A DNA stretch of 63,897 bases, the filler included, from Reticulomyxa filosa (lineage: Eukaryota > Protista > Foraminifera): assembly GCA_000512085.1 (NCBI GenBank). It is 23 parts of 23 records of this genome, joined end to end, with 100 filler letters (N's around TTAATTAATTAA, not from the genome) between each part and the next. Parts side by side here need not be neighbours in the genome. Positions count along the whole stretch, not along the records: positions 56,718 to 57,877 come from ASPP01034777.1; 22 more parts are not named here. One strand, given 5' to 3'. The translations under genes were made by a program, and so were the position numbers. Within the stretch, counting starts at the first letter, position 1. Each line of letters begins with the position of its first letter. Positions 56,618 to 57,877 of the stretch are shown piece by piece. Under the pieces are notes generated by a model. It saw only the letters and a list, made by a program, of their open reading frames with translations. It was not told where the DNA came from and searched no databases.

Positions 56618-56791
56618 NNNNNNNNNNNNNNNNNNNNNNNNNNNNNNNNNNNNNNNNNNNNTTAATTAATTAANNNNNNNNNNNNNNNNNNNNNNNNNNN
56701 NNNNNNNNNNNNNNNNNTTTTTTTTTTTTTTTAAATGATAGAGACGATTAAAAACTATATTGTCTATGTTTGACACAACAATACAAAGCAG

Positions 56792-57877
56792 GAGAGGTTT
56801 GTATATAAGGAAAGTGGAGATCTCTCGGGAGGAATGCAACATAACACAGAACCAAATAAGAATGTCAAAGAAATAAAAGTGTTAATGACATTATTCGGTG
56901 ATGCGATTGAGGAAAGTGAATTGAAAAAGCATCTAGAAGAGAATAATGGAAATGTGGCCTTGGTGATTGAAAAGCTGACATCGAAATTGATCAACTTAGA
57001 TGTATTTTTTTTTAACAAACAAGCAATATATAACTAAAAAAAATTTGTACACGTTTTGTTTTTTTTGTCAATTACACGTTAAAAAAATATATATAGAACA
57101 AAGAGAGTGAAGAAAAGGAAAAAAGTAAAGAAGTTGAAAAGGAATCAGAAAAAGTGAAAAAAGAAGAAGAAAATGAAAAAGTGGGACAAATAAAATCAGG
57201 CATTAATTTGCAAGGATATTGCAATAATGAAAAGTGCTTAGCTTCAAAAGGAAAACTACTCGTTTGGATTAACCTTGAATTTACTGAAATCTCCCTCACT
57301 CCAGACAAGATCAAGTTTGAGTGTCCTAACTGCATGGAAAAAACAGTAACGACGATCATCAAAGCCATGTTTTACAATTCAGATCATTCCATTCATGCCA
57401 TTGGAGATTTAAAGAAATTGGAATCGAACAACTATCAATGCACATACACAATCACATCTGGACTTTGCTATGAATTGAAAGCTAAAAAGATTAGACAGCT
57501 TGCAACAAGTATTGAAGATTTGAGAGTGAGAAGCGAGAATGCTATGAATAGCAATGAAATAGCAAGTTTGATCGCAGAATTACGAAAATACGACATTACA
57601 GTTGTAAAACCACCAAGTCTAAAAGGGAATGATAGATTATTGGAAAAGATTCAAGCCGACTATAAAGGCGATTTCAATCAGGTGTTTGATATTGGAAGAT
57701 TTACAATATTATGCGATAATCCAAACAAATTACAAACAGCAGTAATGGTAATTAAGAAAGCAGATCAATTCAAATTGATTGTATCTGAAGATAAAGATAA
57801 TTTTAATAAGCTATCCAAGACACACCATCGAGCTCACAATATTAAATTATATGTTCCAGAACACAAAGTATATGTAG
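56792..57877 (+). CDS. Ubl-junction / CUE-like / C4 Zn-domain / RelA-SpoT-type nucleotidyltransferase protein, copy 3 (exons 56792-57001, 57097-57877; both ends truncated)
   Basis: DLSGG-MQ; KEIKVLMTLFGD..ESELKKHLEENNGNVALVIEKL; SGINLQGYCNNEKC..FECPNC; KPPSLKGNDRLLEKIQADYKGDFNQVFDIGRFTILC; HRAHNIKL. More divergent paralogue with an in-frame splice. Confidence 0.85.

Follow-up and report, generated by a model that had tools for sequence, protein, structure and literature searches.

The window (the whole stretch of 63,897 nucleotides (nt) analysed here, from the foraminifer Reticulomyxa filosa) contains, at positions 56718-57877, a complete 1160-bp R. filosa contig annotated with a partial protein, RFI_34569 (P0001). 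We propose that the gene on this contig, of which the 5′ part is present, probably belongs to a very large family of paralogous NLR-like STAND proteins that bear a ubiquitin-tied effector head, itself preceded by a short leader ending in Gly-Gly (GG). The domain order of the family begins with a leader ending in [K/R]-hydrophobic-x-Gly-Gly, followed by Met-Gln, a CUE domain, an acidic linker and a four-Cys module, and continues with a Tas1-like RelA/SpoT pyrophosphokinase, a helical region, a NACHT domain and WD40 propellers. In the contig, the reading frame runs ...DLSGG-MQHNTEPNKNVKEIKVLMTLFGDAIEESELKKHLEENNGNVALVIEKL... through the junction and the first exon (exon A), and the second (exon B) reads as an acidic linker and then GINLQGYCNNEKC...VWINLEF...FECPNC.

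An earlier note on this DNA had suggested that a cleavable N-terminal ubiquitin-like domain (Ubl) and a ubiquitin-binding module may be attached to a nucleotide synthetase. Its strings and coordinates (GG at positions 56828-56833, then the MQ junction) were verified on the sequence and are correct: the codons are GGA GGA, followed by ATG CAA at 56834-56839. A ubiquitin link of the family is supported, in a form that is stronger than, but different from, the one then put forward; the headline claim of a cleavable Ubl is not yet supported. Searches with the window copy were run exon by exon, and folding used the spliced protein of the NCBI model P0001; an NCBIfam scan of both exons returned nothing useful.

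An NLR-like family with a predicted enzymatic head

Judged by sequence, the 'synthetase' heads an NLR-like STAND protein (NACHT-WD40) at its N terminus, a context absent from the earlier note. A word search retrieved 39 relatives, 39/39 from R. filosa, and an exhaustive profile search gave 128 representative clusters at 50% identity (that is, a family of at least 128 clusters). All ten of the ten strong profile matches that were looked up are R. filosa proteins named NACHT or NB-ARC proteins. Full-length members have 833-1734 residues, with a NACHT domain above the Pfam threshold (in P0040, P0042 and P0049) and then WD40 propellers (in P0042-P0044).

The catalytic domain is predicted to be a pyrophosphokinase of the RelA/SpoT fold, nearest to the (p)ppApp-making toxin Tas1. 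When a profile of full-length family members was compared with the PDB, Tas1 (6ox6) was matched at an E value of 7.4e-9 and YwaC/SAS2 at 1.6e-4; fold matching by VIA gave Tas1 (Z 9.3), RelQ (8.5), CapRel (8.1) and RelP (8.0), and Foldseek returned Tas1 with a probability of 1.00. The Pfam RelA_SpoT model stayed below threshold in the window copy and the scanned paralogues (16.7-19.9 bits against a cut-off of 27). In the A5 alignment, the K, D-x-x-R, R and E-x-Q columns show no variation, nor does the Y of H-x-x-Y, whose H is nearly invariant, and the catalytic motifs D-x-x-R, G/H-x-R, E-x-Q and H-x-x-Y are kept in full-length paralogues and in homologues from outside R. filosa. The window copy carries D-x-x-R and H-H-R, and its contig stops before E-x-Q. 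Of the nucleotidyltransferase or alarmone synthetase suggested earlier, the RelA/SpoT fold is retained, and the identity shifts, the domain being closer to Tas1 than to alarmone synthetases.

Several proteins touch this family at its edges. P0157 (Guillardia theta, 1281 amino acids), P0146 (2115 amino acids; named 'SPP1 gp7 family phage head morphogenesis protein'), P0143 and P0150 match the RelA/SpoT homologue (RSH) part and keep the catalytic columns. Apart from the module-bearing proteins described below, they are the only other hits of the family profile from outside R. filosa, and from their sequences the cryptophyte protein and the phage-like or metagenomic ones appear to be distantly related to the enzyme head. 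P0052 (RFI, 1017 amino acids) has no CUE domain; its N-terminal region resembles VCBS repeats and leads into a hydrophobic, transmembrane segment and then a long coiled coil of Glu and Arg, with the four-Cys module at residues 601-715 and then the RSH domain; this protein looks like a membrane-anchored variant of the family. WD40-propeller genes also adjoin family members (L005:1227-2499, L008:1711-3282 and L010:1-978) and may be the C-terminal parts of adjacent family copies, that is, tandem arrays.

Two ubiquitin-linked domains in the head

The helical segment of exon A, previously described as CUE/UBA-like, is confirmed by profile match and model as a CUE domain, and ubiquitin binding is predicted. 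Exon A matches the Pfam CUE model (PF02845) with 22.6 bits (cut-off, 21.1) over residues 14-49 of the exon. When P0001 was modelled by AlphaFold2 together with 32 paralogues, the CUE region came out as a compact three-helix bundle (predicted local distance difference test (pLDDT) 90-94) and residues 1-18 as disordered (pLDDT below 50-70). The best structural match of the bundle is the Cue2 CUE-ubiquitin complex 1otr (Z 6.2, root-mean-square deviation 1.8 Å, 49/49 residues, 33% identity), followed by other CUE domains, including SMARCAD1 CUE1, and by several UBA domains.

The second domain is the four-Cys module, which the earlier note had called a C4 zinc domain. Folded alone, it is predicted to form an eight-stranded β-sandwich of about 105 residues (pLDDT 91.6; predicted template modelling score 0.83). 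Across 33 sequences, homologues from outside R. filosa among them, each of its four Cys (in C-x4-C and C-P-x-C) is either invariant or conserved to at least 90%. What remains of the earlier description is thus a conserved four-Cys domain, putatively zinc-binding, which on the model is a β-sandwich of some 105 residues rather than a small zinc ribbon. Against Pfam, the module gave nothing above noise (zf-UBR, E 5.6); a Foldseek search gave no match at E values up to 0.001; and VIA-align found no solved relative, with a best Z of 6.4, to generic β-sandwiches. Zinc-ribbon, UBR-box, IBR, NZF and ZnF-UBP identities were rejected, as only generic β-sandwiches matched. No description of the module was found in the literature searched, and it is probably a new domain family.

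The same module was found in weak profile hits from outside R. filosa (P0148, P0151, P0153, P0158 and P0159). P0148 has a near-canonical ubiquitin (Pfam, 80.5 bits) that ends in GG, with the module directly after it; P0151 (with a Pfam-positive ubiquitin) and P0158 have a Ubl ending in GG and then the module; and in P0153 and P0159 a trypsin-like peptidase comes before it. At the P0148 locus (L011), genes without introns follow one another closely on one strand; this array encodes a peptidase-module protein, an ankyrin protein, three ubiquitin-GG-module proteins and one di-ubiquitin-GG-module protein. A shape search of the ESM Atlas with the module matched clusters that are 93-95% Pfam ubiquitin, and also rotifer proteins. 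Because of the fusions in P0148, P0151 and L011 and of these Atlas clusters, we regard the module, as far as sequence comparison goes, as a recurrent partner fused to the C terminus of ubiquitin across unrelated genomes. The four L011 ubiquitin fusions end in a CaaX-like C-x-[IV]-[IV], and the layout of that locus could fit a compact eukaryote as well as a symbiont or pathogen.

A conserved Gly-Gly before the CUE domain

Among 62 family proteins with a recognizable CUE start, 48 have sequence 5′ of the Met, and GG lies directly before M[Q/D/E] in every one of these paralogue models (48/48); 11 further gene models begin at MQ. The leader tail has the consensus K/R-[L/C/V]-x-G-G, after a hydrophobic stretch. 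At the 11 loci compared, the two Gly residues are encoded by GGA GGC, GGA GGA, GGT GGT or GGA GGT, with variation at the third position only; over the last eight leader codons, the entropies of the three codon positions are 0.94/0.84/1.25, position 3 being the most variable; and each of the 11 loci has at least 12 open codons 5′ of the Met (median, 28). Because its codons vary synonymously, the Gly-Gly is judged to be translated, and these alignments indicate that it is under selection, being neither chance nor a nucleotide signal. Conservation of the GG across paralogues, a check named in the earlier note, is borne out by the 48 models and by this synonymous variation. The junction between leader-GG and MQ would most likely be a processing or recognition site of the LxGG type, resembling a ubiquitin tail, that ends a short, pro-peptide-like leader.

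Proteolysis may have no part in it. GG-MQ could be an uncleaved hinge or recognition motif before the CUE domain, or could mark two translation starts that yield a long and a short isoform, a possibility that we consider doubtful. The Met after GG is invariant and is followed by Gln or an acidic residue (48/48), as would fit a start codon in use; the 11 gene models that begin at this Met point the same way; the window copy, which lacks an in-frame upstream ATG, may make the short form only; and the first 18 residues are disordered in the model, as noted above. A dual start accounts for the Met. It does not account for the invariance of the Gly-Gly and its Lys-hydrophobic context in leaders that are otherwise unalignable, or for the presence of the module after ubiquitin-GG in other organisms.

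Improbable, in our assessment, is the reading of the earlier note, in which upstream exons encode a genuine β-grasp Ubl that ends in GG and is cut by a deubiquitinase (DUB)-type peptidase, thereby arming or regulating the enzyme; the CUE domain might then bind the Ubl in cis, and the cleavage would follow the model of ubiquitin-ribosomal-protein fusions. A tail consensus of K-L-L-G-G does resemble the tails of ubiquitin, NEDD8 and FUBI, a true ubiquitin-GG occupies the equivalent place before the same module in other organisms, leaders reach 64-116 residues in some models (P0041, P0127, P0104 and P0138), and the first-exon peptide (IKxSLKFTN or MTFxFKR) could be a β1 strand. Against this, none of the similarity searches linked leaders to ubiquitin: ubiquitin-clan Pfam models found no match in 10 leaders at E values up to 10, the ubiquitin of P0148 found nothing in leaders and loci (phmmer/tblastn), and alignment of the leader profile with the ubiquitin profile (hhalign) gave a probability of 0.1%. 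P0138, the protein with the longest clean leader, has a poor ESM Atlas model (pLDDT 0.40), and an Atlas search with its leader returned no usable match.

Leader length and structure also speak against a Ubl. The best-supported leaders (P0010 and L003, P0028 and P0092, P0031 and L007) have only 34-46 residues and are therefore too short for a β-grasp; they have a conserved start peptide (MTSDEH.., MTFxFKR.. or ..EDIKxSLKFTN) plus either one normal 75-nt phase-1 intron, as in L003, or a continuous open frame. Between subfamilies, leaders cannot be aligned beyond about the last 14-25 residues, and a six-frame all-against-all comparison of the 1.6 kb 5′ of the Met at ten loci found conserved segments only between very recent duplicates (L001/L002 and L007/window). 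Longer leaders are confined to gene models in which T-rich stretches of low complexity are translated, and some of these models bridge stops with 'introns' of 21-23 nt. GT..AG 'introns' of this size, annotated or frame-saving, were seen at L002:6102-6124, L008:6202-6222 and L004:5186-5207; they are probably annotation devices that bridge stops, and the leader gene models are unreliable for that reason. The stretch before the D-type ..KCNGG tail can be read with a splice acceptor (ttttaatag/G) or as a translated NCILIG-type coding stretch, and the paralogues disagree on it (frame open in P0051 and P0063, broken in L003 and L004); for this region the model with a 75-nt phase-1 intron (P0010) is better supported. 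Taken with the window copy, which is open for only 20 codons 5′ of the Met, these comparisons suggest that the leader-GG junction probably does not terminate a folded ubiquitin-like domain.

A stretch at L010:925-1032 resembles the first half of ubiquitin and has an internal stop (tblastn, E 0.019). It sits 3.6 kb upstream of a family gene, within or overlapping the called WD40-type gene L010:1-978, and may be a ubiquitin pseudogene fragment or a chance match.

Very improbable is a 5′ untranslated region upstream of the Met in which GGAGGA is chance or a nucleotide-level signal (an initiation context or a splice acceptor, AG/G): GGAGG does contain AG, the upstream frame in the window is short and has no ATG, and the leader gene models are poor, but L009 has GGT GGT (no AG) and L010 GGA GGT, variation is confined to the third position, which is the most variable in the last eight codons, all 11 loci keep their open codons upstream, and the leaders have a peptide-level consensus and conserved start peptides in common.

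Gene layout in the contig

The contig is AT-rich (22-39% G+C at 56718-57877) and has a single gene on its + strand, composed of an upstream frame, exon A, an intron and exon B (Table 1). The intron is spliced identically in the NCBI model P0001, and its length is typical because R. filosa introns have a mean length of 87 bp (PMC13746701, table). The T15 homopolymer at the 5′ end is probably an assembly break point; in alignment, this contig-start T-run falls on a T/C-run of L008 that lies within the leader region of that paralogue.

Where the window copy has its frame-closing TGA 5′ of the Met, the paralogue L007 has TGC (Cys) and L008 likewise has TGA, and a TAA at 56732-4 interrupts, in the window copy, the frame that is open in L008. 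Possibilities for this copy are that its first exon lies off the contig, that it starts at MQ or that its leader is decaying.

Table 1 Features of the contig in the window, and the array at the P0148 locus
Feature	Position	Strand	Remark
T15 homopolymer, contig 5′ end	56718-56732	+	Anything farther upstream of the gene is missing
In-frame TGA	56771-56773	+	Closes the frame 20 codons 5′ of the Met
Open frame 5′ of the Met, HNNTKQERFVYKESGDLSGG	56774-56833	+	No ATG; conserved 3′ leader end
Possible splice acceptors	cag/56792 or aag/56810	+	NCBI partial model begins at 56810
Exon A: Met-Gln, short disordered stretch, CUE domain	56834-57001	+	Pfam match, nt 56873-56980; helices begin near nt 56864
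Intron, 95 nt	57002-57096	+	GT..AG, phase 0, T-rich 3′ end
Exon B	from 57097	+	Runs off the contig end
Acidic Lys/Glu-rich low-complexity linker	57097-57183	+	Disordered in the model (pLDDT <50)
Four-Cys β-sandwich module (predicted)	57184-57504	+	P0001 residues 94-200
Four Cys codons	57220-2, 57235-7, 57322-4, 57331-3	+	
RelA/SpoT-fold (Tas1-like) pyrophosphokinase (predicted), N-terminal two thirds	57505-57877	+	Contig ends just before the catalytic VEMQ of full-length paralogues
L011 array	L011:120-5855	one strand	GCA_034680565.1, contig JAXOUH010011527.1

A proposed mode of action

If the contig belongs to an NLR-like receptor with a ubiquitin-tied effector head, as we propose, the WD40 repeats would sense a ligand and the NACHT domain would oligomerize, as in fungal and bacterial NLR/STAND proteins, and oligomerization would activate the N-terminal Tas1-like pyrophosphokinase. 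Acting on adenine nucleotides, which it would deplete or modify, or on tRNA, which it would pyrophosphorylate, the enzyme could serve as an effector of growth arrest or cell death. The CUE domain and the β-sandwich module would tie this effector to ubiquitin, either by recruiting it to ubiquitinated cargo or by placing it under the control of ubiquitination.

Several observations weigh against this proposal. The contig ends inside the RSH domain, before E-x-Q and NACHT, and the full architecture is assigned by homology only. The CUE match is above the Pfam threshold only in the window copy: 2/8 scanned paralogues reach about 12 bits, and the remaining 6/8 have no CUE match at E values up to 1. 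Aligned to Cue2, the ubiquitin-contact motifs differ, LFG(D) standing for MFP and KL for di-Leu; the Phe of LFG is present in the window copy and is Tyr or Cys in some paralogues. The exon structure of the leader is drawn from a comparison of unreliable gene models, several of which use the 21-23-nt 'introns' in a genome with a mean of 87 bp.

An unlikely extension, offered tentatively, is a hitherto undescribed ubiquitin-coupled control of an NLR effector, in which the module is a ubiquitin-associated domain that evolved as a C-terminal extension of ubiquitin and K-L-x-G-G/M-Q is a mimic of the ubiquitin tail. The mimic may be a maturation site for host DUB-type peptidases, or a tripwire for LxGG-specific proteases of viruses or symbionts; were this true, the cut would release or expose the CUE-module-pyrophosphokinase head and lead to nucleotide depletion of the (p)ppApp type.

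NLR-like receptors with RelA/SpoT-type heads are already known from fungi. Here, a protist family of more than 100 copies joins a head of this type to two ubiquitin-linked modules and an invariant, ubiquitin-tail-like Gly-Gly, which offers a concrete link, open to experiment, from ubiquitin signalling to nucleotide pyrophosphorylation of the toxin type in eukaryotic proteins that resemble those of innate immunity. The analysis also uncovered a conserved, putatively zinc-binding β-sandwich, without a Pfam model or solved structure, as a recurring fusion partner of ubiquitin.

Comparison with known systems

In the literature searched, no description was found of a CUE-NACHT architecture or of a head with CUE, four-Cys module and GG leader on fungal NLRs; nor was one found of the head architecture and its foraminiferal expansion in that literature, which excluded the R. 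filosa genome paper. RelA_SpoT is listed among the N-terminal effector domains of fungal NLRs (bioRxiv 10.1101/2022.03.16.484565). As in those receptors, the predicted RelA/SpoT-fold domain is N-terminal to NACHT and WD40, in a large and fast-diversifying family of paralogues. Unlike them, the R. filosa family belongs to a rhizarian (foraminiferal) lineage, its domain falls below the Pfam RelA_SpoT threshold and its effector is preceded by a GG-ended leader, a CUE domain and a four-Cys β-sandwich.

The enzyme itself compares best, by profile and by fold, with Tas1 (PDB 6ox6), the type VI secretion (p)ppApp synthetase toxin of Pseudomonas aeruginosa, and the R. filosa family has the K, D-x-x-R, G/H-x-R, E-x-Q and H-x-x-Y motifs of Tas1 and of RelQ, RelP and CapRel. 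Identity to Tas1 and the small alarmone synthetases is only 20-27%, however, and the R. filosa domain is eukaryotic and lies inside an NLR-like protein. The CUE domain resembles those of Cue2, Vps9 and SMARCAD1 in its Pfam match, its three-helix bundle and its 33% identity to Cue2 CUE1; it differs from the Cue2 type in the window copy, where the MFP motif reads LFG and is one residue longer, and the di-Leu motif reads KL.

At the junction, the closest parallel is to the ubiquitin extension proteins (ubiquitin-eL40, ubiquitin-eS31 and FUBI-eS30), in which a GG-ended N-terminal part is likewise followed by a cysteine-rich, zinc-type module. The R. filosa proteins depart from these in that the part before the GG is short and was not ubiquitin-like in any test run, a CUE domain stands between the GG and the module, and the module is a predicted 105-residue β-sandwich, not a ribosomal zinc ribbon. 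Outside R. filosa the likeness is closer still, as P0148 and the L011 genes are literal ubiquitin-GG-module fusions.

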